Shown: one piece after another, positions 26,001 through 63,685 of the stretch | Position numbering within the stretch: the first letter of the stretch is position 1 | Layout: the number at the start of each line of letters is the position of its first letter | Source of the DNA: Asterias rubens | Lineage: Eukaryota | Length of the DNA stretch: 64,000 nt | Direction: 5' to 3' | Assembly: GCF_902459465.1 (NCBI RefSeq) | Contig: NC_047066.1 | Location: 21,204,001 to 21,268,000 of the forward strand | Program-made: the position numbers and the translations under genes | Notes under the pieces: model-generated | What the model saw: only the letters and a program-made list of their open reading frames with translations | Told to the model about the DNA's origin: nothing | The model's database searches: none

Positions 26001-26561
26001 TTCCTAAACCAATAACTTCACATTTTTTTGTCTGCAGCTTTCTACTTTACTCCAATGATTGTCCTTGCTTGCACTTCAATCATATGCACCGTGCTAGTAC
26101 TCAAGCTGTTCTACCACAACGACCGACGCCCAGTGCCACGCTGGCTTCATCACACCACTTCCAAGCTTTCTCGTGCCGTTCTCTACAATCTAGAATCCCG
26201 CCGTTTTAATAAACTGTCTTACGGTGTGGACCGTGGAGCATCAGAGCAGCGGTTACCACGAGAGTCTGGTGATGAGTCTGAAGGTAGTGACGATGTCATC
26301 GAGACAAGCAACGGCAATAAAACACGCTGTCGTGCCTGTACGGCCCAGCACTCCCGTAAAGACGGGCCTTTGGGTAACGATACAGCCGTAGACATCAAAG
26401 TGAGCCTGCGAGGTCCCAATGATAAGAAGACACATTATGTGGGTACTGACCTAGATTGGAAGGATGTAGCTTTGGTTATTGACCGGGTCGCACTTGCTTT
26501 GTCAGTCACTGTCACGATATCCTCACTTATCATTACTGTTGTTCTCTTCCTTTTGGGATAA
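20055..26561 (+). CDS. CHRNA9/10-like: nAChR-like Cys-loop receptor gene 2, recent duplicate of gene 1, alpha-type, ~474 aa. Exons 20055-20112, 22038-22183, 23066-23110, 24191-24300, 24883-25424, 26038-26561.
   Basis: Near-identical to gene 1 including introns; loop C YACCTIPF; GT-AG introns; exons total 1425 nt in frame. Confidence 0.9.
20452..20864. mobile_element. MITE family C copy, gene 2 intron 1
   Basis: Same TIRs as 11172-11601. Confidence 0.7.
22223..22609. mobile_element. MITE family A copy, duplicated together with gene 2
   Basis: Near-identical to 13169-13555. Confidence 0.85.
23583..23753. mobile_element. Same fold-back MITE in gene 2 intron 3, with 15 nt more in the loop
   Basis: Same arms and the same CATTTGTGG TSD as 14529-14684. 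Confidence 0.8.
25511..25641. repeat. Small inverted-repeat element (15-bp perfect TIR) in gene 2 intron 5
   Basis: GAGGATTCTGTCCCC ... GGGGACAGAATCCTC. Confidence 0.55.
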
Positions 26562-27509: not shown

Positions 27510-29175
27510 TTTTGTTCCCAAATACATAAAAATCAGCAGCAGTCAAGCCAATTCCAAAGATGCACAGCATGAAGGCTGAACAAGTCGAGCTGCTGAAGAA
27601 CTACAGACCTGCCACAAATTTATCGTTCTGCTCGAAAGTACTGGAGAAAATCGTTGCTCAGCAACTTTTAAGCCACATGTCACATCATCGTCTTCATGAT
27701 TATTTTCAGTCTGCATACAAACGATTCCATGGCACTGAAAATGCACTTGTCCGTGTGCAGAATGACCTACTTCAGAGCACCGATGAAGGAAAAGTGTCAC
27801 TCCTTGTTCTTCTTGACCTCAGCGCAGCATTCGACACACTCGATCACAACATTTTGCTGCAAAGATTAAAGTCACGTATAGGATTGTCACAGGGAAGCCT
27901 GGACTGGTTTTCATCATACTTATCGGACCGCTGCCAGAGAGTTAAGATCACCAGCTCATCTGAAGGTGACTCGTATCCGCTTGAGTTCGGTGTGCCACAA
28001 GGATCGGTACTGGGTCCTGTTTTGTTCAACATTGATTTGCTACCACTTAGTGACATCATCCGTCGACACAACCTCAGACACCATTTCTATGCTGACGATA
28101 CTCAGCTCTACATCTCTGCAACCCCTACTCAAAGTGATGTATACAGTAAAATAAAACAACTGGAAGCATGCAGTGAGGACATCAAACACTGGATGACATT
28201 GAACTATCTCAAACTTAACGATGAAAAGACAGATGTTCTGATTATTGGCTCATCGTCGTCTTTGAAGAAATTACCAAAAGTAGATGTTTCTGTGGGCTTT
28301 CATTCCATTAACCCTGTGCCTGAGGTCAAAACTCTTGGTATAACATTTGACAAACATATGAATATGCAATCTCACATCAAGTCTGTCTCCCGTATTGCCA
28401 TGTATCACTTGTACAATATTAGTAAGATTAAGAGGTTTATAGGTCGTCGTAGTACAGAGCAAATAATTCATATGTTAGTCACATCCCGGATTGATTATTG
28501 CAATGCTGGTCTCCCTGCCACCACTCTTGCCCCCTTACAGAGAGTTCAGAACTCAGCTGCGAGGCTACTTACTTGTACCAAAAGGTATATGAGCATATCA
28601 CCCCAGTTCTAATGCAGTTACATTGGCTTCCTGTCAGGTATCGGATTATTTTTAAGGTGTGTTTGTTAATTTTTAAATGCTTAAATGGTCTTTGCCCTTT
28701 GTATCTGTACGATCTTGTTGCTACTAGGCCTGTTGTTAGATCTACTCGTTCTGCTAGTGATGTTACTCTGTTGATCCGCCCCAGAGCGAAGCTGGTTTCT
28801 GCAGGTGATAGGATGTTCTCTGTAATTGGCCCTGAACTGTGGAACCAGCTTCCTAAGCAACTTAGGGAAGCCAGTCATGTTGATACCTTCAAGGCTGGCC
28901 TTAACACAAATCTTTTTAAGCGTGCTTTTTTAAACCACTAAGTACAAGTACATGTACATATGTTTTTGTATTCTCTGTAGCAATTCCAGGTTTTTTTAAC
29001 TAGGGTTTATTCTCAGTGTTTTTTAATCATTGATTGTTGTGTACAAAATCTGCACTTATTACATGTTAACTGTATTTTCTATTTGGTGTTTTAATTGTAT
29101 GGATTTTAATATGTTTTCTTTTAATTGTTCAGCGCCCAGGAGCATGTTTACATGGATAGGCGCTATATAAATTTC

Positions 29176-36200: not shown

Positions 36201-38383
36201 ACACATATTTCGTGTCATACTGACCCGGGCTCAACGGGACCCGGATTCGGGTCGATTCTGACCCGTATAAGATCTTATAGTGAAGGAAGCATGCAACAGC
36301 TTATTATACAATCATAACAGGAATAATTATGTCTGCAGTAAGTGCCCCTTAATGAAAACAGTCAGCCTCTTGACTGAAGAGGACTTCCTGTTAAAGTTTG
36401 AATTGGCAAGGTTAACAAACCCTTTAAAGACAGAACCACGTTTTTCACGTGTATAACCAATCTTATATTTAGATTCCTGTGTGTGTTTAAATGCTACAAA
36501 ACAATTGAGCAGGTCTGAAGCTTAACGTAGATACAACATCTTTGGTATAAACTCCAAACAGAGTTTGTACACACTGTTCACAAAGTTGGACATTAGTATA
36601 ATATAAAGACGGTCCAATAGGGAGAAACTCCCTTTGAGTTATGTTTACCCGAAATGCTATAGTTTTGAGAAATGCATAAAATAATTAGTATTAATCTCAA
36701 GAGACGAAAATCAATATTCTAAAACAATAATTACATTGACCTCTTTTCTCACTGTTTCATCGTGAATAAAATGACCGATTGAGCTTTAATTTCTACTTTG
36801 TTGTCTATGTCGGATCACATAACGAGCGGATACTGGTCTCTGACAAGTATCAAAGTTGTTCATGTGCTTTAAAATCAATCAAAAACAAATGGATTGAAGA
36901 ATTTATATACTTTTTGTTTACGATCTATGACGTCGAGTGTGCTTGTTCAAGCACGTTTCTTTGTCATTTTAACTGCATTGTTCAACTGAGCTGTTCATTG
37001 TTCTGTTTTGTTATTTTAGTGTGGATCCTAAATTTGAGAGTTATAAGGACATTTCAGCGAAGGTTAACAGCACTGGGCAAGTGAAGTGGAGTACTCCAGT
37101 TATCCTTAAGTGCACATGCCGTATCGACGCACGTCTCTTCCCATTTGACATCCAAGTCTGCGAGCTGCGATTCAGCCCGTGGGCCTACGACGCGTCTGAG
37201 GTAAACCTCCAGGCGCAAGAGGCCCTCGCTCTCCATGATCAATATCGGGACGACGGCGTCTGGGAACTCCTCAAGATCGAGGTGGTTCGACGAGAGATCA
37301 CGTACGCGTGTTGCCTGGCTCCTTACCCGGAGCTCTCCTACTTCATACACCTGAAGAGGAGACCTCTATTCCACGTGTTGAACATTCTGCTTCCGTGTGT
37401 TCTGCTGTCTATTCTGAACCTGTTGGTGTTTGCATTGCCCCCGGAGTCTGGTGAGAAGATTCAGTTGGGAATGACTAACCTCCTGGCACTGGTGTTGTTT
37501 CAACAGTTGATCACTGATGCATTACCACCCACGTCTGCCGCAGAATCACCGCGAATAGGTAATGCGCAATATCTAATGTAGGCTTTTGAAATATGGATGA
37601 CACAGTAAGTTATACTTGACACCATTGGATTTGGGTAAATCTGTCTGTATCAAACCAAACCAGTGCACTCCTTAAGTGTCCTATAATATCTCGAAAAGGG
37701 CAATTGAGCATTGTCCACTCAGGGTCGGGGGTGGGTCATGCAGTACTTTAACACTAATCTGTGTACTTTGTGTTGTTCAATAATACAGCTAAAAAAGTCC
37801 AATATTATATTCTGCTTTGTATTTAGGTTTCTACTTTACTCCGATGATCATCATTGGCTGCACTTCCGTAATGTGCACCGTGCTTGTACTAAAACTGTTC
37901 TACCATAACGACCGTCGCCCAATCCCGACCTGGCTGCGTAAATTCATCTCCAGAACAGCTCTAATCCTCTTCTACCGACTTCAAAGTCACAGTAAACCAG
38001 GGAGCCGCCATGTTAGTGAGTCAAGGAAACAGTCTGGTACCCGGATCGAAATGAATAGCGATTCTTCGTTGATGGAGAACAGCGAGACTGCTGAAAACAA
38101 GGCCAATGAAACCAACGCAGTCAGGAAACACGTTTGCAGCAACTGCCGGATGAGCACACGGGAGAATGGTCCAACCGGCAACTTGTCAATTAACATACCA
38201 CCGAGAGCTGACAAAACAGGACGAAGAGGGAAGATGAAGACCAGTGAGTTAACTTCAAAGGAGGTGATTTTAGACTGGAAGGATGTAGCGTTGGTTATTG
38301 ACCGGGCCGCTATGGTTCTATCGGCCCTCGTTACAGCATGCGCAATTGGGACCACTGTTGTAATGATCGCTATAGGGGCGTAG
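30246..38383 (+). CDS. CHRNA9/10-like: nAChR-like Cys-loop receptor gene 3, alpha-type, ~488 aa. Exons 30246-30312, 34404-34552, 35131-35175, 35832-35941, 37020-37558, 37827-38383.
   Basis: Signal-like MMVRCASNYTWACLMVLASLFLG followed by G|gtaagt in phase 1; ISGWLTQ; [10 protein letters not shown]; [15 protein letters not shown]; FSPWAYDA; loop C YACCLAPY; M2 [24 protein letters not shown]; exons total 1467 nt in frame. Confidence 0.88.
31605..31690 (-). mobile_element. tRNA-like SINE head (second family)
   Basis: The reverse complement reads GTGGCGTGTCTAGCCGAGC...GTGGGTTCGAGTCCTGGCC, with A/B boxes but no clean cloverleaf. Confidence 0.45.
32113..32493. mobile_element. MITE family A copy, gene 3 intron 1
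   Basis: Family A TIR and internal sequence; degenerate right end. Confidence 0.8.
32954..33058. mobile_element. MITE family A, left-end fragment
   Basis: TTAAAGGCAGTGGACACTATTGGTAATTACTC..., truncated. Confidence 0.7.
33986..34360. mobile_element. MITE family A copy, ending ~43 bp before gene 3 exon 2
   Basis: Family A TIRs and body. Confidence 0.8.
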
Positions 38384-43025: not shown

Positions 43026-46000
43026 ATGGCTGGACTCGTTGCTGTTTTCATCTTAGTGGTATGCAGTACTCTTCTCACAGGTAACCAATTTTGTTTTCAG
43101 TTTCAAGTTTTGTAATATTTATGTATGAATATTATGCCTGGCTTACTTTCAGATATAATCAACGTAAGATGCAGGGTATTTGAAACGTGGTAAATTTCAT
43201 GACTAATTTATATACATCGAATTGGAGATCATGCTATTAAAGGCAGTGGACACTATTGATAATGGTCAAAGACTAGCCTTCACAGTTGGTGTATCTCAAC
43301 ATATGCATAAAATAACAAACCTGTGAAAATTTGAGCTCAATCGGTCATCGAACTTGCTTGCGAGATAATAATGAAAGAGAAAAACACCCATGACACACGA
43401 AGTTGTGTGCGTTTAGATTGTTGATTTCGAGACCTCAAGTTCTAAATCTGAGGTCACAAAATCAAATTCGTGGAAAATTACTTCTTTCTCGAAAGCTATG
43501 GCACTTCAGAGGGAGCCGTTTCTCACAATGTTTCATACCATCAACCTCTCCCCATTACTCATCACCAAGTAAGGTTATATGCTAATAATTATTTTGAGTA
43601 ATTACCAATAGTGTCCACTGCATTTAAGCCTGGCTTGCTTTCAGATACACTCAACGTAAGATGCAGGGTATTTGAAACACGCGTGGTAAATTTCATGACT
43701 AATTTATTTACATCGAATTGGAGATCATGCTATTAAAAGAGAGAGCATAACAGTTTCCAGTGTTGAGGTTTTCAACAATTTAAACCTTGGTTGAATAAAG
43801 TTGTTTTTTTAAGTGTCATCTATGTATACATTATGTTACAGTAGTGGGGTTATGATATTAAATTAGTTTAAATTAAGTATTCGTTTTTAATTCGGTACAA
43901 ACCGGGTCCACAGTCGCTAGGAGACCGGAATTTTTATTAGGCAGTTATGTGTTTCAAAGCTACCCGCTCAAAAATATTTTCAGCACGTGTAGCCTTGGGA
44001 TGTCTGAGCGTTTTCATGTATTGCATAGACTCTAGAATATACTGGTATACTATGAGTAACAATAGTTTTTTACTCATTAAGTTTTATTTCGTCGTGTGTG
44101 GGGGATAAGGGAATGTGATAATGACATATTGATAAATTGCAAAAGCAATTATTTTGTTATGTGCAAAATTGTCGTATTCCAGTAAAAGCTGTTTGATTAG
44201 TTTTCTGTCACACATAAATCATCACAGTGAGGTTAAATTCTACATGGGTATGGGAGAAGTGGTCTTTGGAATAATAAAGGCAACAATTTTGTTTAATAAC
44301 TTAATGGCCTGCCCTTTTGTAACTGGAAAATGCACTTTGTGTGCCTGGAAGAAAATGCAGCCTTGTCTGTCTATATAAAATCGAAATGTATACCAACAGA
44401 TAGGACTGCCTCTATAGACATTGGGATAAAGCCCAGTGGTGTAGTGGTAGGACATCTTCTATGTAAAGAAGCAATGCAAAGGACGTACATTTTTTTTCCA
44501 CCGGACTCGAGAAGTGTACAGTGCGTTTACACATCAATGTTTAATAGGGTAAATACCAAAAAGTGTAGTCAAAACAACGAACCAAAGCTTTGAATCAATG
44601 TTCACAATAACGAAGAAAAACATAAGTTACTGGTGATTGAGACCTTGTCCTTAAGAACAATAGTACAATAACAACACCACCTGATGCTAAAAAGATGTAG
44701 GTCACTGAATATAGTCCCTATATCTGGTACATAATAACAAATTAAGGCAAAATAACCGAATATGAAATATTACTACTTGGTAACTCTTAAAAGCGTTACA
44801 AATAACTTACTCTGATTTGGTGAAAGCATGCAGCTAGCGGTGCATAGATACAAACTACTCGCATCAACCAAGTGCCGAACTCACTCAGCCCTCTACACAC
44901 GTATGCTGCCTGCCCCACCCGAAATAGCCTATAGCCTTCTTTGCCCACGGTTGAAAAACTAAGAACTAAAGATTGGAAAGAAAGTCTTCCTTTATAACCG
45001 GAGCATGCTGTATGTGAATGATTGAACCAAACAAAGGGCCTCAATGTGTTTTACCAAAGGAATGTTGTCCTATACTGTGATGATTCAATGCGAACTATAA
45101 CAAGTTTGATTTAGAAAAGGAACCCTTGTTCAAAGAAAACAAATGCGTGTCCATTTCCACAAGTGACTGACCTGAACTAACTATCATGGGATGAGGGGAA
45201 AATCAAATGGTCCTTATTGGGATTTGAACCCAAGACCCATGACACTCCGGGCATTGCTCTACCAACTGAGCTGTGCGGTACAGTCGTTTACTCCCTCAGG
45301 TTTTCCTGAAAACTACATTTTTTTCTCTCGGGTTGCATGGATGCGCAAGTGGGCAGAGGAACAAACACAATTACTAGTCCACATTCAACAGGGGATCGGG
45401 AGGGGCTGAAGCCTGGACCAAACCACAGGGTGATTTCTTTTAAACTACAATATACAACAATACTCATTTTGGTTTTTACCCATACACCGATGTCTGTTAG
45501 CACTGTATACTCAGTACTTACCGAGTTCTGTACAAAAAAAAATCACAGGCATATTGCTCGGTGGAATTCGAACCCACGACCTTTGCAATTCTAGAGCAGT
45601 GTCATACCAACAAGACCACCGTATACAACAACTGATAGTACCTTTTCTACAGACCAACTTAACATACCAACATTTTAATAATAGTCTTTTATCATTGTAC
45701 TTCTATAGAGAGCGAATCAAAGATGAGTAATAGATCTGCACTGTTGCAGAATCTTCTGGATGAGTACGGGCCAAGCACAATCAGACCCGTACACAACATC
45801 TCCAATAAGATAACGGTAGAGTTCCGGCTTCTAATCACCCAAGTCATTGAACTGGTAAGATTGTCTTTAATTGCCTCCCCCCCCCCCCCCATTATGGGTA
45901 TATTTACTTGTAAGATTGCCAATTGCCTCTTTATTGGTCATTGAAATGGTAACGATATTTAATTGTCTCTATATGGGTAAATGAACTTGTAAGATTCCTA

Positions 46001-49000
46001 ATTGCCGATATGTTGCCCCCCTCTCCGTTTAGGCCATTCTAAATAGTAATGTAATATTTTACTCCAAATGTTTAACTATGTAACTGTTCATGTAATTCTG
46101 CTGCTGGCAGCGAATATAATAGATTTTAATAAACCATTGAATGAATGTCAGCAGTCACTGATATACTCACTGGAACAATTATTTTCAGTTTTGTAAAGAC
46201 CTTTTGTGAATCTGACACCAACTTGCACAATGCCAATACAAATGTAAAACTGGTTTGTACAGCTAGTAAGAGTAGTCTAATTTTCGTGTTTTTTTTTTTT
46301 TTTTTTTTTTTTTTTTTGGCGAACTCCTTTGCAAAAATGTTTGCTGTGACGTTGCAAGAGGACCTAATTAGACTCTTAATTATTTAGAAGGCTTCCTGTT
46401 TTTATAAGAATAATGGTATCGTAGTTAAGTCTATCAAAAGACGCTTTGTGAATTATTTAAAAGGTAGGAAGAAAACGCATTCAGTTTGTTCGATCGACAG
46501 TAACAGTGCATTACGAGACTAATGGGACAATGCAATATTGCTCAGTAGTCACAGGCAGATGGTGTGGATTTGTTTATTCACATTCGCGTCGTTTGTGCCT
46601 GGCGAATGACGCAGAAAATACACAGTGGTGATTTTTGCGATGCAATTTATGCTGCCAGACTCATAAAGTATTTTTAATTAATAAAGTATACACCGCAAGG
46701 GAAACTGACTAAGTAAATTTTAAATTAAATTGGGGCTGAACAAAGAAATTATGGATAGACGATTGTCTTTTTCTACTGTGCATTCGGGGTAACATCATAA
46801 TGAAATTTATGAAAAAAATGCCAAAACTAAGTTAAAATTTTAGTTAAATTTATGTATAGAATGATAATTTTTCAGAACTCAATCAACAGAACAAAGCATT
46901 CTTTACAAGAAACTCTAATGACCAGAGCTTACCAGCAATTGTACGAATAATTTACGTAATTAATTTGTGCGTGTCAAACCAACTGGTCTTTTAGTTGGTA
47001 AGTAGTTTGCCACAGCTAATACTGTTTTCTCAAAGGAGGTCATTAATTATGTTTTAAATTCTTTTCGCGTAAACTTTCAAGGTTGAAAGGGGAAACAGCT
47101 TTTTAATTTTTTTCTTGTTATTTCCCTAAAAGCATTTCAATATGCCTACTTGGCAAAATCAAGTACTTGACAAAAAACCGGTGTAATCAAATTGAGCGGT
47201 GCACTGTTGTCACAACGTCGATTGACTGTGACTCCTGAGCAAATTTCCCCCCAAACCCACTGTGTGTTAACATCATAGTTTTTTTAAATAACACCAATGA
47301 ATTGTGTTGGCAGAAACTGGTGTTACTTTTACACCTTAATGGGGTGAATTTAGGTTGCCTTTTCGGTTTGTACGAGGTGACATCACATTTGGTGTAAATT
47401 TTAACACCCCAGCTTGGCAGTGTATTATTTATGTAGTAAGCAGTCTCTTGAAACAGCAAATGGAAAATATTTCAACTTCGAGTGCCACTTTCTCCAAACA
47501 ATAGAGTGGCTATATAATTTTAAGTCATCTGCGTACGGTGATACGGAAGCGTATTGCTGCCACATGAATACAAAAAAATCTCTCTTATCGTGTAGGTAAA
47601 GTCATCGTGTAGTACACAATGAGAGAGAAAACAAATATTAAACATGTGGCGGCAATGGGCTTCTGTACGGTGACGAGTATCTTTTCAATGTGCACAAAAT
47701 GTGGGCCATTCTGACGCACTAAACAACCATGACGGTTTTTTAATCTAACTTGAGCTTGTTGTTGGGGGCTGTGTACTTTCCTTATGGGAATTTGCAGCAG
47801 TTTAATTTGCTTTTTCTTATAGTCTTAGGACAATGTCAACATTGACAGGGTCATTTATTACGCATTGCCAAAGGCGGCAGCGTTTTATCGTTGGCTGGTC
47901 ATTAAAATTACCATGGATGGAAGCAATTATTCAATGAAGTAAAAAATCGTGGTCGTGGGTTTAAAAAACAGCAAATATTTACCGTGAGTCCAGTTTTGGT
48001 CTTTATTTCCACCCATCCATTTAATGGACTCCCTATAAACATATACATCGTTCTTTGGGGCACGCTGAGTGTATTTTTTAACTATTTGTTTAATTGTCGC
48101 TGTTTGTTTGTGTGGGTGTGGGTTTTCCCAGTTAAGTTCAACGATGCTGTTTTTTACTTGGCTAAATTTATTATATTCTGCGAAGGATTTATGAATAAAA
48201 CACATCTTGCTATAGATTTATTGTGTTGGTTTTAGTAAAAGTGTATGAGAATTTTTTGAAGGCCTTTTTCTTACGAGAAGTTCACTGACTGTCTTCACAC
48301 ATTGTATTCTCTTTTCCAGAATGAAAAGCATCAGACGATACAGATCAGCGGCTGGCTGAGACAGGTGAGTGTTTTAAAGACACACAAAACATACATTGTT
48401 TAAAGGCAGTGGACACTATTGGTAATTACTCAAAATAATTATTAGCATAACACCTTACTTGGTAACGAGTAATGGGGAGAGGTTGATGGTATAAAACATT
48501 GTTAGAAACGGCTCCCTCTGAAGTGCCATAGTTTTTGAGAAAGAACTAATTTTCCACGAATTTGATTTCGAGACCTCAGATTTAGAACTTGAGGTCTCGA
48601 AATCAAACATCTAAACGCACACAACTTAGTGTGGCAAGGGTGTTTTTGTCTTTCATTATTATCTCGCAAGTTCGATGGCCGATTGAGCTCAAATTTTCAA
48701 AGGTTTGTTATTTTATGCATATGTTGAGATACACCAACTGTGAAGGCTAGTCTTCGACAATTACCAAAAGTGTCCACTGCCTTTAAACCACACCTTATTT
48801 ACTGTGTTTGCAATTGATAACCATTGTCATTAATTACGGTTGTGGTTGATTACGGATGTAGTTAATTACGGTGGATAGTTAATAACGGTTGTAGATGATT
48901 ACAGTAGTAGTTGATTACGGTTGTAGCTGATTACGGTTGTAGTTGATTACGGTTGTAGTTAACTACGGTGGTAGTTAATTACGGTGGTAGTTAATTACGG

Positions 49001-51665
49001 TTGTAGATGATTACAGTAGTAGTTGATTACGGTTGTAGTTGATTACGGTTGTAGTTGATTACGGTTGTAGTTGATTACGGTTGTAGTTGATTACGGTTGT
49101 AGTTGATTACGGTTGTAGTTGATTACAGTTGTGGTTAATTACTCTTTAATTGAATACGATTTTGTTTAATTACGGTAGGAGAAACCTTTGCCTTCCTTCT
49201 CGAATTGTTATCAATATTTCAATTGAAAAATCACTGACCTTCCAATCACGTGGTTTGTTGTCCACTCCATCTTGTTGGTGTATTTTCCCTTTTCCCGAGG
49301 GTGCGTTAAATGTTTAAAACATCACTGTTCGACAGGAAGACACAAAGACAAATTAAGTTAAAGTTAAATTAACAGTTACGATAACACATGTTTGAAATCA
49401 ATTAAGTATTAATTCAATTCAAATGAAAAACAAAAATATCATCATAACACATAATGCATTACATAATTACACATGTATAAACATTTAATAATTTCGCTCT
49501 GAAAGAGAAGAGTGCGTGACGAAACTTGATTTGCTTTTCTCTAAACTACAGACTTGGAACGACGAGTTCCTGATGTGGAATCCTGACGAGTATGGAGGAG
49601 TTCAGAGCCTATTTGTTCACAAATCTAGAATATGGCTGCCAGATACCACACTGTACAAAAAGTAAGTGTAAACCATAGACTTGGTGAAGCGTCTAATCAG
49701 CAAACCCTTTCACGATATTTATTACGATTCGCGACGATGGTCCACACCGGGTCCTGTCGGGCCTTTCCCATTTCTGGATCAATATGCTATGATGCAGAAT
49801 ATGTTTCCAAATAACACAAACATTTTTCAAAATATCTCAGAATCCGAGTTAAAATACAATTTTTAACCCTTTTCCGGGAAATGGGTTACGCCCCCAGGAC
49901 ACAAAACCCAGGTTGGTTCCGACCCGGAAGTTCATACCGTATGTCCTACTTCTGCCGAACGTATGTAAAATGTTTACAGACAGAGGAGTTTTGACAACCG
50001 ACAACTTGTAATAATAATCAAGGTATAGAAACTTATTTGCTTCGTTGGCTGAAAGTTTTCACTATCTCCCTCCACCAGTGTAGACAGGGACTTTGAGAGC
50101 TACAAAGACATCTCAGCTGAAGCCAGGTACGACGGCCAAGTCACCTGGTCCTCACCAGTCATTCTGAAATGCACCTGCCTCATCGACGCCCGTCTCTTCC
50201 CCTTCGACACTCAGGTCTGCGACCTGAAATTCTCCTCATGGGCTTTCGATGGCTCAGCGGTCGACTTGGTCATGTCTACGGGAGCTAAGGCCCTACAGGA
50301 TCAGTTCGCAGACACCGGCGTTTGGGAGCTATTGAAGGTGGACGTGGTCCGTTTTGAGACGTGGTACACATGCTGCCCACATCCATACCCGGAGTTGACC
50401 TACTCGTTACATCTGAGACGGCGGCCTCTGTTCCATGTCTTGAACATTATTCTCCCCTGTTTATTGCTGTCTATTCTGAACCTGATGGTGTTTGGCCTAC
50501 CCCCAGAGTCTGGGGAGAAGATCCAGCTTGGAATGACCAACTTGCTCGCTCTGGTTTTATTCCAGCAGCTCATCAGTGAATCCTTACCACCAACGTCTGA
50601 AAATTCACCAATTATTGGTACGTCAGTTACGCCTAGTAGTTACTTTTCAAAAGTTTAAATTTAGAAATCATGAATCATGTTTCAATGAACATGTTTTAAG
50701 AGAGCATTATAGTTTCAGAAACAGCCGTTCAATCTTAACTTGAACCAGTCTTCGTTAAGGATAACCCAGAACAACTCTGATGGTCCATCGAGATCTCTTA
50801 TTGGCCTGTTCAATTATTGGCCAGCAGACTTACCAAGCAAAATCCAGTGTTCGCGGTAATGTACGCATGCTCAGAACTACGAAAACAATGGAAATGTACC
50901 TTGCGTTCCAAAATCTTCCATAATGGTAATAGTATGTTTATCTCTCTTTCCTTGCTTTGTTCTTGTTTTATTTATTGTTCAGCGCTTTGATCTGTGCTAA
51001 AGGCGCTATATAAATACCTATATTATTATTTCTATTCCGCAGGTTTTTACTTTACACCCATGATCGCCATTGGCTGCACGTCCATCGTATGTACCGTACT
51101 CGTACTCAATCTATTCTATCATGACAACCGCCACCCCATTCCAAGATGGCTCCGGTGGCTCTCTTTGAAACTCGCTGTAATACTCTTCTACCAAGTGAAA
51201 CGTCAGCCAGTGGTCGTCAACGGAACCTGTAACCCAGCCTTCCGATTGGATAACGAATCAACCAATCAGGGCTTTACAGAGAGTGACTCAGGGAGGTTAA
51301 CTGCAAGCTGTAGCTTCACCGACTCATCCAGTTCCACGAACGGTGATGGTACCGTAAGCCAGAGCGAGAACACCCCCAATGGTGACGGCCAGAAGAACTG
51401 CAAGTCCCGCTGCCGAGCTTACAGTATGCACATCATGCAGGAGGTGTATTCGAACGGGAATGACCCAGTACAGATCAAGGCGAGTGGGACAGTGGCAAGG
51501 AAGGCAGCCAGAGCAAACAAGAGGAAACCAGACCCACCACGAGGGGTGATTTTGGAATGGAAGGATGTAGCATTAATCATTGACCGATTCACTATGGTGT
51601 TATCTGTACTTATAACAGGAACGGCAATGGCAGTTACCATTTACTTCTTTGCAATGGAAATCTAA
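43026..51665 (+). CDS. CHRNA9/10-like: nAChR-like Cys-loop receptor gene 4, alpha-type, ~505 aa. Exons 43026-43080, 45709-45854, 48320-48364, 49552-49661, 50079-50617, 51043-51665.
   Basis: Signal peptide [19 protein letters not shown]; ISGWLRQ; [10 protein letters not shown]; [15 protein letters not shown]; FSSWAFDG; loop [10 protein letters not shown]; GT-AG introns; exons total 1518 nt in frame. Confidence 0.9.
43237..43627. mobile_element. MITE family A copy in inverted orientation, gene 4 intron 1, flanked by ~105-bp direct repeats
   Basis: TIRs with TTAA flanks. The direct repeats are 43136-43240 and 43628-43736. Confidence 0.85.
45468..45620 (-). mobile_element. tRNA-derived SINE, same family as 18171-18310
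   Basis: The reverse complement carries the A box, the B box (GTTCGAATTCC) and the same 3' body. Confidence 0.65.
48400..48786. mobile_element. MITE family A copy, gene 4 intron 3
   Basis: Complete TIRs with TTAA flanks. Confidence 0.85.
48831..49142. repeat. Minisatellite, 16-bp unit GTTGATTACGGTTGTA, ~19 copies, gene 4 intron 3
   Basis: Tandem units seen directly; the right part is more homogeneous. Confidence 0.9.
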
Positions 51666-56103: not shown

Positions 56104-59100
56104 TTAAAGTGTCTCCAGATTATAACCATTAACTCGAATGATAAAACATACAATAGTGATAACCATAGCGATGACGGTGACCAATGCACATAGCATTAAA
56201 GCTGCACGATCAATCACCAAAGCAACATCCCGCCACAGTAAAACATTCTGACTACTTGGCAAGTCACCACTCTGATGCCGTCGATCCTGCATGGACTCCA
56301 CCTCTGCACTTGGTTGCAATTTAGCTTTAGCTCTTGCCACGGGTGCGTTGACGATCTTCGATCGGGTCACGGATGCGTAGAGACTACCCTGGGATGTATT
56401 GATGGTTTCCGATTGGACAAGGCGGTTTTCTCCCCAACCAGCCACCCGGCAATAACTCACTCTTGACGGCGTTAACTCTGTGTCAGTGCCGGTCAAATTT
56501 CCGGGATTTGTTTCCCCGAGACTAACGGTATCAGGATTGCTGAAACTCCCATCACGTTTCCCCGTGTTTTGGGGTTGCTCTGGAGTTTTCTCCCAAGCTT
56601 GGTACCGCACCAACTTAGAAATAACTTTGAGTACAAGCCACTTCATCCAACGGGGTATGGGGCGCCTGTTGTCGCGATAATACAAATTCAGAACTGTCAC
56701 GGTGCACACAATGGAGAAACACGACAGGGCAATCATTGGAGTAAAATAGTATCCTGAAATAAACAAAAATATTACCGACATTAAACACCAATGATTGTAG
56801 AACATTTTCAGGTAAAAGTTCTAAAACATTTACGACAATTTGATAACAAAGTCCTTCGAACTCCCGTGATATTCAAATTAAAACAGAGTTGACTTTGACC
56901 CTTTGACCATCAACAAACTGAGTTAAAATTGAGTTGAACTTATATATTTATAAGGAATCCTTTGTTGGAAAATCAGTCCATCACAAAACTAAATTCGAAC
57001 TCCAGCCCCCTCTTTAAAAACAACTCAAGATAACTTACCAATGATTGGTGTGTTGTCCGATGTGGGCGGCACCGAATTACTGATGAGTTGCTGGAACAGA
57101 ACCAACGACAATAAGTTTGTCATACCCAGTGATATCTTCTCCCCCGACTCAGGGGGCAAGACAAACACCATGAGATTCAGAAGAGACAACAGCACACATG
57201 GCAAGACGATCTCAAGCAAGTAAAACAGCGGCCTTCTACGTAGATGAATGGAGTACGATAACTCCGGGAAGCTAAGACCACCGATTGTGGAATCCTTCGC
57301 GGTGATTGTAACTTTTAGAAGCTCCCATACCCCGATGTCTGAGTAGAAAGTCTGATTAGCATGGTTCTTCATTTTGGTGAAGTTCATTTCCGTAGCACTG
57401 TAAACCCACGAGGTGAACTTTAGTGTGCAGACCTGGGTATCGAAGGGGAAGAGGCGTGCATCGATACGGCAGGAGCTTTTCAGGATTGCCGGTGTGCTCC
57501 AATAAACAAATCCATCACTATAGACGAGAACTGGAATGTCTTTATAGCTTTCGAAGTCTCTATGCACACTGTAATCCAAAAGGGAAAGTAAAACAAAATC
57601 GATTAGCATTATTAAAATAAATGTCTTGTAGCAATTTCATGGTTCGGGCATCAGTCAACATTTCGTAATGCTCTTAGTATTAACCCTATTACACCGACAT
57701 TGCAATCTATAAGATTTGGTTTCCGTCCAACCGCGCAACGCATGGTTTACCAAACATTAATGCAACGTTAAAACCCACTTTGAAACAGTCAAAGGTAATA
57801 TCTATATACTTTGCACGATTTGGGGCAGAGGGTACTCCATGAATTTCCAAATATAATATTTTCCTCTTGTACGGAAGTACACCCCTTAAAACCTCAAAAG
57901 AAGTCCTGTGATTCCAGGCATGCAATGGAAACACAATGTGGTACACCATAAACAATAGAACTTTATCATGGTGCGGCCATCTTGATTTTCTCCCATTCAA
58001 ATCAATGTAACCAAACCGAGGCTGAAAGGAGAATCGGTCTGGTTCTTTTTAATACAATGAATTGTATGATGTTGTTGGAGACAGGGAACATGACCAAGAT
58101 GGTGTCAGCATGATAAAGGTCTGTATCGAGCACCAAATGGTGATGGAAATTGTGTCCCTACCCTTTATACAGTGTAGTATCGGGGAGCCAAATTTGTGAT
58201 CTGTGCACGTATAAATAATCCACGTCATTGTGTTCTGTAGGATCCCATTGCATGAACTCGTCCGTCCAACTCTAAAACAAAAGGGGAAAACACCACAATA
58301 AGAATTCTGAATTGAAGTTGATTCTACAAAATCTCAATGAAGAGTGCGAGAGACTACTTTTATTTCTAAGGGATTTATTTCAAACAATTTAAGAAATGTA
58401 TAGTTACCTGTGACAACCAGGCTGATATTTCAATTGTTTGGTGGCGCTCGCTCTGAGTTAAAGAAAACAACAAATAGCTTGTCAATCAACAAGAAAACAC
58501 ATCATTTCTAGCTAGTATAACATTACATTTAATTTCCCATGCAGAAGTTTAACTCCCAATGTTGATTGATTTATAAGTGGCAGAAAACCGATCGAACAGT
58601 TTTGTTGAACAACAAACTAGTTTACATTACTTGCTAACGCCCCTTCTTCTGTAACTTTTCGTTACGCCCCTATTTCGGGAACACGGCTAATTCTTATGTG
58701 ATGAGAACTGCAACGAATGTTTTCACCAATTCTATAACTTGTACAATGAGTATAAGCTGAAGCTGCAATGAGGCTCTTACCAATTCTATAACTTGCGCAA
58801 GGAATATAGCTGGAACTACAAAAAAAAGAGTTCTTACCAATTCTATAACTTGTGCAAGGAGTAGCTGAAACTGAACCGTAGTAGTCTCATACATGTCATA
58901 GACCGGGCGAGTAGATGGGTATCCATAGTTATCAAGTAGTTCTTTCAGTAAGACGTTCTGAGCACTCATCGGGTGGAGACATCCTGAAAGGAAATGTGAC
59001 CAAACATTACTTCGTGGGTTTAAAGAAAGCAATACAATATATAATCTCATAACCGTGGGGAAAATTCAAATGTCAAAATCAACATCCCATTTTGTTTACT

Positions 59101-59403
59101 TGTTCTGAAACCAGCAGCTGTTGACTTACTTTGTATTTTACTTAAACCATGTTGTCTTAATCTAAGAGTGACACATCCAAACTCAGAAATTAATAAATTC
59201 ATCACCATATTTTACGGTTTTAAAATAATTGAAGAACCATAATGCATCTGCATTTAACCGGAGAATGCATAATGTCCATTTTTATTTTCTTAAATAATTA
59301 TAAAGCAACCATATGTAGATAAAAAAAAATTGGAAAAGTTCTTACCGCTCTCTTGGAACACTGACGGAAATATCAGGAGCACAACCCACTTCGCCAAATC
59401 CAT
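56104..59403 (-). CDS. nAChR-like Cys-loop receptor gene 5, non-alpha (no loop-C CC), ~512 aa. Exons 59403-59346, 58983-58838, 58452-58408, 58271-58162, 57568-57039, 56753-56104.
   Basis: Signal MDLAKWVVLLIFPSVFQESG; ISAWLSQ; [10 protein letters not shown]; [15 protein letters not shown]; FTSWVYSA; loop C AKDSTIGGLSFPEL; M1-M4 present; exons total 1539 nt in frame. Confidence 0.9.
58727..58890 (-). repeat. Three tandem copies (57- and 54-nt spacing) of the 3' end of gene 5 exon 2 including its splice donor
   Basis: CAAGTTATAGAATTG|gt occurs three times, at boundaries 58838, 58781 and 58727. Confidence 0.85.
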
Positions 59404-60246
59404 TTCGGTGCACAATCTGTATTCTCAAAGTACACAGATCCGTAAGTTGCAGTTCCTTAACTTGTCGATTGATGCGCGGTCTAACAGCTTTCAAACGGCA
59501 ATGAATGTATCATGTGCAATTATGCCGATTAAATGATGACGCTATTTTAATTTACGTTTTTCATGGACACTGATTGAATAAGATGGTTAATGGGTATGAT
59601 ATCATGCAGTGTATAGCCAAATGACCCGTAGACTCCATCTCAATACCTTTTATGTTCGTTTATTGAATTCATTATTCATTATACTTCTAAATGATAGATA
59701 CACGGTTTTAATGGAAGAGGAGGCTTATTTAAGTCATTCGGCTCGGACTTTAGATTCGGAACAATCTGTTGACAATTAATTACACCATGATACAATTATT
59801 ATGCAATATGCCTATCTAAATTTGAGTTTCGTTATTACCGATCGTTTGTTGTTAATTACATTTCTTTGTCGAGGCCATTCGAACTTCGCCAGTGAGGAGA
59901 ACTAACTTTTAATATTTCCTATTAACACATATATAACATATCTACTATAAGTTTTTATTTATTCTCCACTACCAAATCCCAAAAATAACCGCCTGGTATT
60001 CACCAAGCGGCAGCCAACAGGCTTACCAAGCAGCCGCTTCCCCCACTCATTCAAGGCCCGTCCGTTAGCCTAGCTATAAAAGCTGTAAACTGTACGATGA
60101 AGTCTACTTAACAAACAGCATCTTTAAACCTGATCAGGTGCTCAGGGTTCGATTGAAAGTACTAGGATTCACAGATGATCTGTCAGTATTGTCATAGTTA
60201 CTTGTATTTTATTGTTTCATGTTGACAATGACAATTAAACGTACAA

Positions 60247-60389
60247 GGGGAGACTTTTGGGACGCTTGGTGGCAGCAGACCTACCAGGTAAAATCCATTG
60301 TTCTCGGTCATGTGCGCACGCTCAGAACTACGCAAACAATGGAAATTTACCTGGTAAGTCTGCTGCCACCTAGCGTCCCAAAGTCTCCC
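60247..60389. mobile_element. ~143-bp fold-back MITE (family E) between gene 6 and gene 5, with partial copies near 50818-50906 and 62915-62980
   Basis: GGGAGACTTTTGGGACGCTTGGTGGCAGCAGACCTACCAGGTAAA pairs with TTTACCTGGTAAGTCTGCTGCCACCTAGCGTCCCAAAGTCTCCC. Confidence 0.7.
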
Positions 60390-60619
60390 ATTGGAACAAA
60401 TAATAATGAGTATAATTGTGAAAACATAGATGCCACATAAATCAACATAAAATTTATAGAAATTTTAAAGATAATATCGAGTGAATTCAGTTAATTCTTT
60501 AACTCTGGATTGGTAATGATTCAACGGTTTTTTAGTTTACTATGCATTCCCCTAACAATTTAGTCCAGTATCGGCCTATCTTTTAGGAACATATTTGAAG
60601 GAGATCACATTGTTGTCTA

Positions 60620-63600
60620 TCAACCATGTTTAATATGCAGGATGTAACTTGAGGCAGTTACACCAATTGATCCCAGTGTAACCAGAGTGCTGATGAATAA
60701 GGCTGTACGGTCTATCACCAGAGCAACATCTTTCCAGACGTAGCCCTTGAAAGCACGATCACGGCCTTCTCGTTCCGATGGGTGATCTTCAGCGTGGCCC
60801 TTGGTTCTTTCGACGGGGGAGCTGGACGTTTTTGACCGGTTGGTCGATGCATAATCTCGCCTCGGTGCAATTTGAAGAGTGTCGGGCTGAAAATGATGGT
60901 TCTCTACCCAGTCATCCACCCGGTAAAGATGAATATCTGACGGCAGCAAGTCACGATGGCTGATAGTCTCGGGCCCGGAGTCCAGACGGCCGTTGTGTGG
61001 ACATCTTTCGTCGACTGGTTCTTCATCGAGAGTTTCTTCGGGAGCTGGGTATCTTACTAACTTACCGAGAACTCTGAATGTGAGGTACTTTATCGAGCGA
61101 GGTATGGGACGCCGGTTATCCCGATAATAAATGTTGAGGACGACTACGGTGATGATGATGGAGAAACATGACAGGGCGATCATACACGTGAAGTAATACC
61201 CTATAGGGGGAAAAGACAATAACATTCGCTGAAACATGCACGATTATATTGGGTTATTCATTATTTGTACACGAGTGTCTTTGTTGAGAAAGAAGCGGTA
61301 TATTTTATTGAAAGGAACTTCAAACAAAGTTTCCACCATAAACTACATATTGGCGAATACTCAAAATAATATCAATGACCATAAAACCTTGCTCGGTTAG
61401 AAGCACTGCAGCCGTTGGTAGTATACACTATTTCGGGATTGGATTCCCCTCAAAGGGGTATGATTTGGTTAACCCTTCATCCAAAAACCATTTGATTATA
61501 AGAAACATTCATGCATGAATCATTTTATCAGATTTCTGAGGGTGGTGTACGTTCGCTATGCCTCTGCCAGAGGTGCGGTTGATATTCGCCGTCATTTTGC
61601 TAAATGTGGGTAGATTAGACTTTCCTTTGAAAAAGCTTAAACTTTTAAATGCGTTTTATTGCACGTGCCGTTATACTTTTGTTTTTAAATAGGCATAATT
61701 TTAAGTTGATAAAAAGGGGTAAAGTAGTGGGGCATATTTACCAATTATTGGAGTGTTTTCTGACGTTGGAGGCAAAAATGACCCAATTAGCTGCTGAAAG
61801 AGAATCAGCGACAACAGGTTAGTCACACCCAGTGATATCTTCTCCCCTGACTCCGGAGGCATTAGAAACACCATGAGATTTAGAAGAGAGAGCAGAACAC
61901 ACGGGATGAAAATATGGAGCAAGAAATAGAGAGGTTTTCTTCTCAGATGAATAAGGTAGGATAGCTCAGGGTAGGCTATAGATTCCCCATAGGCATTCGA
62001 TTCTCGGGTTACCTCTACGTTGAGTAGCTCCCAAACCCCAACATTAGCGTAGGTGGAAGTTAAAGGTAGTCGTTCAGACTGTGTGAGATTAAGCTGATTG
62101 GCACCGTAGGCCCATGATGTAAACCTGAATTCGCAGGACTGGGTATCGAATGGGAACATTCTGGCGTTGATTTTACAAGAGGTCTTCAGTGTAGACGGTG
62201 AAGACCATTCCACGTGTCCACTATTTTGTACAATCAATGGGATGCCCTTGTAACTGTCAAACGGTTTGTCAACGCTGTAATTGTAGGCATAAAATAATGC
62301 AATTTAGTATCAGTTTAACAAACATCTAACAAGTTAAATAATTTTGATTTAAAAGGTTTCTCTGTGCTGCGAAAAACTTTAACCACATGTTGGTAAGCAA
62401 TTTGATCAAAATTTCGACTTACTTTTTGTAAAGAGTAGTATCTGGCAGCCATATTTTAGACTTGTCGACGTAAAGAACATCAATGCCGTTGTAATCATTT
62501 GGATCCCAAGTTAAATACTCGTCCACCCATATCTGAAAATGTAGATAAAATCAACCGGATATAATTAATAAAAACGAACTAGTTTTTTTCAGTTGAACAG
62601 AGCACTGATCAAAATTTCATGCTGATCGTTAAAATAGTCATCCGTTTTTACAACAGCCACCAGAACTCGAACAAGACTATTTTGTAATTACCTTGAATTA
62701 CATTGCCACAAACGATTCTCCAAATATAACACCAAGATCAAATATTTAAGTTTTGACGGCCAACTTCACGAAAATAAATTAAGTTTCATTCAGTTTCATT
62801 CAGTTTCATTCAAATGCAGGCATGCTTCCCTACATTCAAACTAGGGTTCCTTTGTAGTCACTTCCCGAGTGACAGGCGGGTACCCATTTCTCGTCTGGAT
62901 AACTACCTTTAAGCATCACTTTAACCAGGAACAATGGATTCACCTGGTAAGTATGCTGCCACCAGGCTTCCTGAAAGTCCATTATTTCGTTTTCGTGCGC
63001 AAATATACAAGCTACATTTTCGCAATTCTCAAGTTGAATGTGTACAGCCAATTAATGACAGCGATGCAATTGAAAAGTTGACCAGCCTCTTGCTGTTTGT
63101 TTTTGCGAAATTATACGATAATATTATATTAAGTTACAAATAAAAAGGTAACTACTGGAATAAATCAATTTATTTGCCAATGACTAAATACTGATTGTTA
63201 AAGGTTCTAAAACTATAAAACTGTACCTGGCTTAACCAAACTCCCATTTCCAAGGTCTGATATCGCTCACTCTGTAAGGAAAAAGAAAAAGTATGGAATC
63301 AAATCACGAGTTTCATTAAGGATAAAACAGTGTAAGGTCCTTTAAAGTTATAATTAGAATGATTTAGTCGCCAGTGATTAAAACAAATCCACCAGAATTT
63401 GAAGTATTGGCCACACACCATAACAAGCTTTTGTTCTTCACACACAACACAGTAAAACACTATACTTTATAATCAGTTCAACAACAATATACCTAAAACT
63501 ACAATTATATCTAACATGAAAAATTTCCATTACAATCATTACCAATTCTATGACTTGGCGGATTACCAGACTAAATACCACTGTTGTTACATCCGATACG

Positions 63601-63685
63601 TTATATACGGGTCGGGTTGATTGGAAACCGTAGCCACCAAGTAGCTCCTTCAGAAGTACATTCTGGGCACTCATCTGACGACATT
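60620..63685 (-). CDS. nAChR-like Cys-loop receptor gene 6, non-alpha (no loop-C CC), 5'-partial. Exons 63685-63543, 63271-63227, 62532-62423, 62274-61742, 61200-60620. The signal-peptide exon probably lies beyond 64000.
   Basis: ECRQMSAQNVLLKELLGGYGFQSTRPV; MGVWLSQ; [10 protein letters not shown]; CKINARMFPFDTQSC; FTSWAYGA; loop C RESNAYGESIAYPEL; M1-M4 present; GT-AG introns in frame. Confidence 0.88.

Follow-up and report, generated by a model that had tools for sequence, protein, structure and literature searches.

Predicted non-alpha nicotinic receptor subunits of old alpha-type ancestry in a sea star gene cluster

The window analysed here, a stretch of 64,000 nucleotides from the sea star Asterias rubens, contains six intact Cys-loop receptor genes, recovered as spliced models built from its sequence. 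Vicinal cysteines (Cys-Cys) are present at the tip of loop C in genes 1 to 4 and are absent from genes 5 and 6. The sequences identify genes 5 and 6 as predicted non-alpha subunits that descend from alpha-type ancestors; the clade to which they belong is specific to echinoderms and lies within the alpha7/ACR-16 half of the family. As in the non-alpha class generally, their Cys-Cys is missing, the loop D Trp of the complementary face is present and the channel is intact. On balance we consider it probable that both genes encode functional non-alpha subunits, that they go back to an old alpha duplication, and that their products co-assemble with the neighbouring alpha-type subunits, these propositions being taken jointly. 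Their most likely role, as we infer it, would be that of complementary-face partner to the adjacent alpha-type subunits in cation channels.

Gene models, transcripts and rates of change

All six gene models have AG..GT splice sites at every intron and follow a common exon plan, in which a signal-peptide exon precedes exons of 146 (143-149), 45, 110, 530-542 and 524-650 nt (Table 1). Exons of genes 5 and 6 match the Pfam families Neur_chan_LBD and Neur_chan_memb above the curated cut-offs. A sequence-only reading of the window had described these two genes as inverted relative to genes 1-4 and as compact, and our models bear this out: genes 1-4 lie on the plus strand and genes 5 and 6 on the minus strand, and from ATG to stop gene 5 spans 3.3 kb and gene 6 3.5 kb, compared with 6.5-8.6 kb for genes 1-4.

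Table 1. Positions of receptor genes, exons and loop C segments, numbered from the first nucleotide of the window
Feature	Position	Strand	Basis and remarks
Gene 1, alpha-type (Cys-Cys)	10774-17439	+	ATG-to-stop 6.7 kb
Gene 2, alpha-type (Cys-Cys)	20055-26561	+	ATG-to-stop 6.5 kb
Gene 3, alpha-type (Cys-Cys)	30246-38383	+	ATG-to-stop 8.1 kb
Gene 4, alpha-type (YTCC), tail-to-tail with gene 5	43026..51665	+	ATG-to-stop 8.6 kb; XP_033627848.1 'alpha-9-like'
Gene 5 candidate exon 1, signal peptide MDLAKWVVLLIFPSVFQES	59346..59403	-	ORF and donor scan; phase-1 GTAAGA donor
Gene 5 exon 2, N-terminal helix and first strands	58838..58983	-	146 nt; AG..GT, open frame; 100% identical to XP_033627794.1
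Gene 5 exon 3, loop D Trp (SAWLSQ)	58408..58452	-	45 nt; spliced model
Gene 5 exon 4, loop A Tyr (WLPDTTLYK)	58162..58271	-	110 nt; spliced model
Gene 5 exon 5, loop E, Cys-loop, loops B, F and C, M1 to start of M3	57039..57568	-	530 nt; Pfam LBD and membrane domains, PDB matches
Gene 5 loop C, AKDSTIGGLSFPEL	57259..57300	-	Alignments: Cys-Cys absent, shortened by 2 aa, Ile in place of the first Tyr and Phe in place of the second
Gene 5 exon 6, M3, cytoplasmic loop, M4, stop	56104..56753	-	Pfam, spliced model
Gene 6 exon 1	about 64060-64147, just beyond window end	-	From sequence flanking the window
Gene 6 exon 2	63543..63685	-	143 nt; spliced model
Gene 6 exon 3, loop D Trp (GVWLSQ)	63227..63271	-	45 nt; spliced model
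Gene 6 exon 4, loop A Tyr	62423..62532	-	110 nt; joint 62274/62423 in RNA runs X1 and X3
Gene 6 exon 5	61742..62274	-	533 nt; RNA joints 61199/61741 and 62274/62423; X3 word depth 135-168
Gene 6 loop C, RESNAYGESIAYPEL	61962..62006	-	Alignments: no Cys-Cys, 1 aa shorter, both Tyr retained
Gene 6 exon 6, M3, cytoplasmic loop, M4, stop	60620..61200	-	Pfam; X3 contig 60366-61183, depth 131

Public annotation already covers these genes, either named as beta-like or predicted as protein. Gene 5 matches the A. rubens RefSeq protein XP_033627794.1, 'beta-3-like', at 100% identity, and genes 3 and 4 correspond at 100% identity to proteins named 'alpha-7-like' and 'alpha-9-like'. None of the three names mirrors orthology, and 'alpha9-like' is used here as an annotation label only, because true vertebrate alpha9 and alpha10 lie outside the sample of our tree. 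The large homology searches used exon 5 alone as query and, later, the RefSeq proteins. The publications consulted on A. rubens nicotinic pharmacology (Lystar5) do not treat these subunits.

Both RefSeq models of gene 5 lack a signal peptide, and its candidate exon 1 is missing from RefSeq; together with the three names, its addition is the correction that this analysis offers to the annotation. We accept the candidate exon on account of its ATG, its phase, its donor and its conservation across species, the reads being no part of this basis. In the sister species A. amurensis its ATG, frame and donor are conserved, with two synonymous changes and one replacement, and the predicted intron 1 measures 362 nt in gene 5 and 374 nt in gene 6. 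As a similarity query, gene 6 exon 1 returned a weak match only (LAKWVVL, E 0.75). An alternative start at an in-frame ATG at 59050, reading into exon 2, was rejected, as the corresponding A. amurensis sequence is disrupted by a 1-nt deletion and a stop. The region delimited in the sequence-only reading ends at 63685, which is the start of gene 6 exon 2, and exon 1 of that gene falls beyond the window.

The sequence-only reading had left room for these genes being untranscribed or non-functional, and the results point the other way. Gene 6 has an intact frame of 499 codons with a signal peptide, and its spliced contigs in two RNA runs have the joints of our model, with an X3 depth of 98-168 across exons 5-6. 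Word depth for gene 5 is only 1-4, in the single RNA-like run that covers it; a contig of run X3 ends at the exon 5 donor (57038), and the joint between exons 5 and 6 is deduced from this contig end and the depth figure, being absent from the listed joints. Against its A. amurensis orthologue, gene 5 has a dN of 0.0088 and a dS of 0.085 (omega 0.10), a value comparable to the 0.06 of alpha-type gene 4; its introns have diverged by 3.5-9% and its 5' flank by 2%. Gene 5 is thus under strong purifying selection, which extends to the absence of the first loop C Tyr.

Expression of gene 6 is high and its evolution rapid, yet a sister species does without it: the gene has been deleted from A. amurensis, where the 3' end of the last exon is the only relic, and its branch in the tree is long (0.33, compared with 0.08-0.10 for its sisters). 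Omega between gene 6 and its nearest paralogue (XP_033627796.1) is 0.43. For that paralogue, comparison of the A. rubens and A. amurensis orthologues gives an omega of 0.52, with 5 of the 24 loop C residues changed; loop C is the same in both species in two other paralogue pairs. Differences in gene 6 among runs comprise six replacements and five silent changes, and the transcript contig from run X1 carries A100P and P102S within loop C.

Loop C, the ligand pocket and the pore

The alpha-type genes carry the loop C motifs YPCCTTPF (gene 1), YACCTIPF (gene 2), YACCLAPY (gene 3) and YTCCPHPY (gene 4). Spliced models and alignments agree with the sequence-only reading on the residues of genes 5 and 6: loop C is shortened to the stated extent, with the Tyr residues lost or kept as listed in Table 1, and the loop A Tyr (WLPDTTLYK), the loop B Trp (TSWVY in gene 5, TSWAY in gene 6) and the loop D Trp are retained. 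Gene 6 therefore has all four principal-face aromatics, namely the loop A Tyr, the loop B Trp and two loop C Tyr. In gene 5 the first two are kept and Ile and Phe replace the loop C pair. With the aromatic box intact apart from the first loop C Tyr of gene 5, a quaternary amine could still be bound by the principal face. Aromatics in loops A and B are likewise kept by vertebrate beta subunits, so their retention does not discriminate between the readings considered below.

Both genes have a C-x13-C Cys-loop containing FPFD (CKINARMFPFDTQSC in gene 6) and retain the PPESGEK ring. The determinants of cation selectivity are in place, with Glu at -1', no Pro-Ala insertion, the 9' Leu and an (M/V)TNLLSL segment; selectivity for cations is assigned from established knowledge of such pore determinants. 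At pore positions 2', 10' and 20' the Cys-Cys-less and Cys-Cys clades show fixed differences, the former having Ser in place of Gln at 2', Ser in place of Ala at 10' and no acidic residue at 20'. Loop C lacks the Cys-Cys and is 1-2 aa shorter in every sampled member of the Cys-Cys-less clade. Conservation within that clade is lowest in loops B and C (mean identity 0.49 and 0.39, compared with 0.72 and 0.63 in the Cys-Cys clade), although the Cys-Cys-less sample covers deeper paralogues than the Cys-Cys sample, which alone is enough to depress these identities.

An AF2 model of gene 5 shows four long helices together with a beta-sandwich and an N-terminal helix, and its superposition with human alpha7 gives an rmsd of 2.0 A (325 columns, 37% identity). 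In Foldseek searches with this model the top matches were all nicotinic receptor (nAChR) chains (E about 1e-34), and by sequence the best solved relatives are the alpha7 (225 bits), alpha4, beta4 and beta2 nAChRs. The model folds loop C of gene 5 into a tight hairpin whose turn is GG (pLDDT about 89). As a monomer, the model confirms the fold and the loop C hairpin and does not bear on the inter-subunit pocket.

Ancestry and age of the Cys-Cys-less genes

A maximum-likelihood tree was computed with the loop C columns excluded. Genes 5 and 6 fall with proteins of Acanthaster planci and Patiria miniata in a Cys-Cys-less clade (support 100/99) whose members are XP_033627794/796/797/853, Acanthaster XP_022105177 and Patiria P0166. 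Its sister (97/94) is the Cys-Cys clade of genes 1-4 (98/94), and each of the two clades contains Asterias, Acanthaster and Patiria sequences. In Acanthaster and Patiria, as in A. rubens and A. amurensis, a Cys-Cys-less gene is paired tail-to-tail with a Cys-Cys gene. The inverted, tail-to-tail position beside an alpha-type neighbour is ancestral for sea stars. In A. rubens itself the Cys-Cys genes number four (1-4) and the Cys-Cys-less ones at least five (genes 5 and 6 and three past the window end).

That genes 5 and 6 might be recent, Asterias-specific derivatives of genes 1-4 is suggested by their place in a single cluster, by the common exon plan and by their compactness. This origin is contradicted by the Cys-Cys-less orthologues in Acanthaster and Patiria, by the support values of the tree, by the conserved synteny across genera and by an AU test that rejects an Asterias-only origin (p = 6.7e-6), and we give it practically no credence. 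The clade's Acanthaster and Patiria members, the AU rejection and the shared arrangement together indicate that the Cys-Cys loss predates the split of Asterias from Acanthaster and Patiria. The sequence-only reading had proposed that the genes were either newly derived non-alpha partners of genes 1-4 or receptors re-tuned to other ligands; a non-alpha state reached from alpha-type ancestors fits the tree, and it is the word 'newly' that has to be given up. A grouping with ancient beta-type subunits, which that reading had named as a contrary outcome, was not found in the tree: fish beta2 lies across the root from the echinoderm clade with genes 5 and 6, beyond a 100/100 branch, where it joins the heteromeric branch of alpha2-like and insect alpha1-like subunits. 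As the Cys-Cys loss is old and common to all sampled sea stars, genes 5 and 6 would appear to be ordinary non-alpha subunits.

The cluster offers a well-dated, independent origin of non-alpha nicotinic subunits in a deuterostome outside the vertebrates, with the Cys-Cys/Cys-Cys-less tail-to-tail pair kept in all three sea-star genera examined. It may serve as a natural replicate for the loss of alpha status, in which the loop C Cys-Cys, the loop length and pore positions 2', 10' and 20' are concerned. Otherwise the diversity is of the kind expected of invertebrate nicotinic receptor families.

Proposed role, alternatives and known systems

An alpha-type gene was duplicated before the split of Asterias from Acanthaster and Patiria, one duplicate losing the loop C Cys-Cys and shortening the loop; the duplicates have been kept since as a tail-to-tail pair, with both members multiplying in Asterias. 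In the mechanism that we favour, Cys-Cys-less subunits would join the neighbouring alpha-type subunits in heteropentameric, acetylcholine-gated cation channels, to which they would contribute a complementary face made of the loop D Trp and loops E and F, as well as a pore lining altered at 2', 10' and 20'. Their own principal face would probably form a poor agonist site or none, most clearly in gene 5, where the first loop C Tyr has been lost. The low conservation of loops B and C within the Cys-Cys-less clade and the fixed pore differences count for this partner role. The omega of about 0.4 and the deletion in A. amurensis make gene 6 a better fit to a redundant or diversifying gene than to an obligatory partner. 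Between gene 5, constrained and without the first loop C Tyr, and gene 6, fast and with both Tyr, there is a hint of a difference in kind.

It is conceivable, if on the unlikely side, that the Cys-Cys-less subunits act autonomously, as homomers or heteromers of their own gated by acetylcholine, another quaternary amine or a biogenic amine. The 5-HT3 and other Cys-loop receptors are gated by agonists without a vicinal disulfide. Gene 6 and most clade members have retained the Tyr of loop A, the Trp of loops B and D and both loop C aromatics, the gating and pore elements are all intact, the clade with its aromatics is older than the split of Asterias from Acanthaster and Patiria, and in Asterias there has been a separate multiplication of the Cys-Cys-less genes. 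Against autonomy stand the selectively maintained loss of the first loop C Tyr in gene 5, the weak conservation of loops B and C, and the one-to-one association with an alpha-type gene that has remained stable in Acanthaster and Patiria and suggests joint use. Moreover, the Cys-Cys-less annelid relative Alpo4 is silent to acetylcholine and to more than 30 other compounds (PMC10338036).

We regard as improbable a re-tuning of the subgroup of gene 6 and XP_033627796.1 to non-cholinergic (sensory, environmental) ligands, with loop C under diversifying selection, and we are equally doubtful of a divided history in which this subgroup diversifies by positive selection while gene 5 stays a conserved structural partner of alpha-type subunits. 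Such re-tuning would account for the elevated omega of gene 6 and its paralogue, the loop C changes in the latter, the two replacements that an RNA contig from another sample shows within loop C of gene 6, the long gene 6 branch, and the gain and loss of genes between sister species; if true, it would yield channels tuned to ligands other than acetylcholine, with a gene content that varies between sister species. An omega below 1 is explained equally well by relaxed constraint, the two other paralogue pairs have identical loop C across species, and the cholinergic aromatic box is kept, unlike that of cephalopod chemotactile receptors. It is very unlikely, in our judgement, that gene 6 represents a redundant duplicate in the process of being lost and gene 5 is effectively silent, neither being functionally important. 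The relic of gene 6 in A. amurensis, the six replacements against five silent differences among runs, the very low RNA depth of gene 5 and its RefSeq models without signal peptides would be in keeping with this. The intact frame, signal peptide, correct splicing and high depth of gene 6 argue against it, as do the omega of gene 5, its conserved candidate signal-peptide exon and its little-diverged 5' flank.

The preferred reading, with genes 5 and 6 as old non-alpha partners, can be set beside several known systems. Among oyster nAChR-like genes, 99 of 132 lack the Cys-Cys (PMC6896357), and Alpo3 and Alpo4 of Alvinella are Cys-Cys-less nAChR-like subunits (PMC10338036). In these expansions, as in the sea stars, the vicinal disulfide has been lost repeatedly in lineage-specific tandem duplicates, often with the aromatic box kept; the oyster and Alvinella subunits belong to another phylum and to other clades, and the sea-star set is a small family of intron-rich genes that includes a conserved alpha/non-alpha pair, in contrast to a large, retroposed expansion. 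Cephalopod chemotactile receptors (cited in PMC10338036), nAChR-derived with diversifying binding loops, offer a possible analogy for the fast-evolving gene 6 subgroup; genes 5 and 6 differ from them in largely retaining the cholinergic aromatic box. Receptors of the alpha7/ACR-16 type ('alpha9/10-like') lie on the same side of the family tree and provide the best solved match by sequence and fold. The sister genes 1-4 keep their full YxCC...Y/F signature, whereas genes 5 and 6 lack the Cys-Cys and the acidic 20' residue, and gene 5 also the first loop C Tyr.

The vertebrate beta2, beta4 and accessory beta3 subunits share with genes 5 and 6 the absence of the vicinal Cys-Cys and a shortened loop C, and they likewise retain the loop A Tyr, loop B Trp, loop D Trp and cation-pore motifs; beta2 and beta4 chains are among the top-scoring solved structures for the sea-star genes. 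Loop C is shortened by 1-2 aa in genes 5 and 6, compared with about 5 aa in beta2. Beta2 lies across the 100/100 split and is not orthologous; the non-alpha state of genes 5 and 6 had an independent origin. Alpha and non-alpha genes share one cluster in vertebrate CHRNA5/A3/B4, as they do in the sea-star window.

Organization and identity of the receptor genes

Six-frame ORFs and Pfam scans revealed a row of Cys-loop receptor genes in the window. Spliced models of genes 1-6 were assembled manually and with scripts; in all six the frame is open and the introns have AG..GT borders. They share an exon plan in which a signal-peptide exon is followed by exons of 146 (143-149), 45, 110, 530-542 and 524-650 nt. 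The models reproduce the gene spans of the sequence-only reading, as well as the inverted orientation of genes 5 and 6 relative to genes 1-4.

Features of the window and its margin
Feature	Position	Strand	Description
Gene 1	10774-17439	+	spliced model, 6.7 kb; XP_033627850.1
Gene 2	20055-26561	+	spliced model, 6.5 kb
Gene 3	30246-38383	+	spliced model, 8.1 kb; 100% identical to XP_033627849.1, 'alpha-7-like'
Gene 4	43026-51665	+	spliced model, 8.6 kb; 100% identical to XP_033627848.1, 'alpha-9-like'
Gene 5	59403-56104	-	spliced model, 3.3 kb; 100% identical to XP_033627794.1, 'neuronal acetylcholine receptor subunit beta-3-like [Asterias rubens]'
Proposed gene 5 exon 1	59403-59346	-	encodes MDLAKWVVLLIFPSVFQES, then phase-1 GTAAGA donor
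Gene 6	~64147-60620	-	3.5 kb; exon 1 just beyond the window edge
Gene 6 exon 4/5 and 5/6 joints	62274/62423; 61199/61741	-	read joints
ORF upstream of gene 1	4160-5203	-	347 aa; no relation to the receptor genes
KCTC example	15900-15990		extra cysteine
ORFs between genes 2 and 3	27560-28941		reverse-transcriptase-like, 350 aa, then 147 aa; probably a non-LTR retrotransposon fragment
Terminal-inverted-repeat elements	57957-58122; 60256-60382		gene 5 intron 4; downstream of gene 6 stop
Possibly related stretch	~62840-63050		gene 6 intron 3
57-nt tandem unit	58725-58872		2.7 copies; gene 5 exon 2 end and intron 2 start
RNA-like contigs	59810-60620		run X3, depth 99-131
Stretch missing from A. amurensis	~60900-65830		A. 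rubens locus 3137-8070 vs A. amurensis locus ~8245-8253

The locus is on LR699096.1 of assembly GCA_902459465.3, where the protein predicted for gene 6 has 499 residues, and gene 5 is already predicted in RefSeq as 'beta-3-like'. Beyond the window end, after gene 6, lies a further gene lacking the vicinal cysteines (XP_033627796.1, 495 aa). When an exon 5 profile of genes 5 and 6 was searched against 1.8 billion cluster representatives, the closest proteins were echinoderm; a word search with the best full-length match returned named sea-star paralogues.

All four of genes 1-4 carry the vicinal cysteines that mark alpha subunits at the tip of loop C. Spliced models and alignment confirm that genes 5 and 6 have lost this pair and have a shortened loop C. 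In gene 5 the loop (AKDSTIGGLSFPEL) is 2 residues shorter, with Ile for the first Tyr and Phe for the second, and in gene 6 (RESNAYGESIAYPEL) it is 1 residue shorter with both Tyr retained. The loop A Tyr, loop B Trp and loop D Trp, which had also been read as kept, are present in both models, together with a C-x13-C loop with FPFD, the PPESGEK rings and the 9' Leu. Genes 5 and 6 are cation-type nicotinic-family subunits in which all structural elements for a channel are present and the alpha signature is absent; they are datable non-alpha subunits of a known kind and not a new kind of receptor.

An additional cysteine (KCTC) lies 2 residues before the first Cys-loop cysteine in genes with the vicinal pair. 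It is also found in the pair-less genes of Acanthaster and Patiria, while those of Asterias have Ser, Thr or Ala at this position.

Age of the cysteine loss

An IQ-TREE tree of 48 sequences, built at a careful setting with loop C columns removed, places genes 5 and 6 in a pair-less clade (support 100/99) with three more Asterias paralogues, Acanthaster XP_022105177 and one Patiria protein. Its sister (97/94) is a clade with the pair (98/94) containing genes 1-4 and one protein each from Acanthaster and Patiria. Sister to both jointly are other sea-star genes with the pair and brittle-star genes without it. The entire echinoderm clade (98/99) adjoins a hemichordate protein with the pair and falls on the alpha7/ACR-16 side, separated by a 100/100 split from fish beta2, alpha2-like proteins and insect alpha-like 1. 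The tree supports an origin of genes 5 and 6 from alpha-type ancestors and not from the ancient beta lineage: fish beta2 lies across that split. At least 7 changes of the cysteine label are required on the tree, so the loss has been recurrent; a separate urchin/hemichordate 'YPDAPG' clade is also present.

Forcing all Asterias genes of both clades together, a group named after the tree was seen, lowered the log-likelihood by 70.9 (AU p = 6.7e-6). Gene order points the same way as the tree: each of A. rubens, A. amurensis, Acanthaster and Patiria has a pair-less gene followed tail-to-tail, at a distance of 2.7-8 kb, by a gene with the pair. Taken together, tree, AU test and gene order place the duplication and the cysteine loss before the split of Asterias from Acanthaster and Patiria. 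The inverted orientation of the pair-less genes is ancestral, and the proposal that genes 5 and 6 are newly derived must be abandoned.

Divergent histories of genes 5 and 6

Genes 5 and 6 are unlike each other in selection, expression and presence. Gene 5 is conserved, and the examined runs show low expression of it. Its protein is 98% identical to the A. amurensis orthologue (dN 0.0088, dS 0.085, omega 0.10), with introns diverging by 3.5-9%; for alpha-type gene 4 the values are dN 0.0074, dS 0.119 and omega 0.06. Among the sequencing runs, X2 is DNA-like, with even depth across introns, and X1 and X3 are RNA-like. Depth over gene 5 in X3 is only 1-4. One X3 contig stops at 57038, the exon 5 donor, and the depth of the following bin is compatible with reads running on into exon 6, weak read support for this joint, which is not among the listed ones.

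In RefSeq, gene 5 is modelled without a signal peptide in both A. rubens and A. amurensis, with an internal Met as the first residue. From sequence, we propose an upstream exon 1, whose following intron would be 362 nt (374 nt in gene 6). In A. amurensis its ATG, frame and donor are kept, with 2 silent changes and 1 replacement; the 5' flank diverges by 2%. Another in-frame ATG, at 59050, was considered as the start and rejected, being broken in A. amurensis. In the 57-nt tandem unit, the final 9 nt of exon 2 recur along with the GT donor. As the frame is open across all copies, use of the second donor would keep it, adding 19 residues.

Gene 6 is expressed and fast-evolving, and the sister species does without it. 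Its transcription is established by spliced contigs: the exon 4/5 joint occurs in X1 and X3 and the 5/6 joint in X3 too, both coinciding exactly with the modelled borders, and exons 5-6 reach depths of 98-168 in X3. Gene 6 and its paralogue XP_033627796.1 differ with dN 0.151, dS 0.35 and omega 0.43, and the latter and its A. amurensis orthologue with dN 0.032, dS 0.061 and omega 0.52, including 5 of 24 loop C positions. Other samples differ in gene 6 by 6 replacement and 5 silent changes, 2 of the replacements within loop C. No gene 6 orthologue was found in A. amurensis by locus comparison. The missing 4.9-kb stretch holds the promoter and most exons, leaving only a relic of the last exon's 3' end, so the two sister species do not have the same set of genes in this array.

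X3 contigs run past the gene 6 stop to ~59810, interrupted only by a repeat; the gene 6 3' UTR may therefore come as close as ~400 nt to the start proposed for gene 5. The short terminal-inverted-repeat elements (28-nt and 37-nt arms), with word depth of 1e4-5e5 in all four runs, look like a highly abundant MITE-like family, to which the stretch in gene 6 intron 3 is perhaps related, judging by similar ORF translation.

Possible subunit roles and known receptors

The pore lining is fixed differently in the pair-less clade and the clade with the pair (2' Ser vs Gln; 10' Ser vs Ala), and 20' is Asn/Ser/Thr/Gly in the former vs Asp/Glu in the latter. Loops B and C of the principal face are the least conserved in the pair-less clade (mean identity 0.49 and 0.39, vs 0.72 and 0.63 in the clade with the pair), a comparison weakened by the deeper paralogues in the pair-less sample. 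We infer that genes 5 and 6 partner their alpha-type neighbours, as vertebrate beta subunits do: the pair-less subunits would co-assemble with them, supply the complementary face and modify conductance. The mostly kept aromatic box would also suit subunits that bind agonist autonomously, through their own face. Vertebrate beta subunits also keep the loop A and B aromatics, so retention in genes 5 and 6 does not discriminate, and autonomous binding stays a serious rival to partnership. Re-tuning to other ligands, which the sequence-only reading had offered as its second possibility, is a minor rival and concerns the gene 6 subgroup.

Non-alpha subunits have many separate origins. The oyster has the vicinal cysteines in only 33 of 132 nAChR genes (PMC6896357). 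They are also missing from annelid Alpo3 and Alpo4, the latter still an orphan receptor (PMC10338036).
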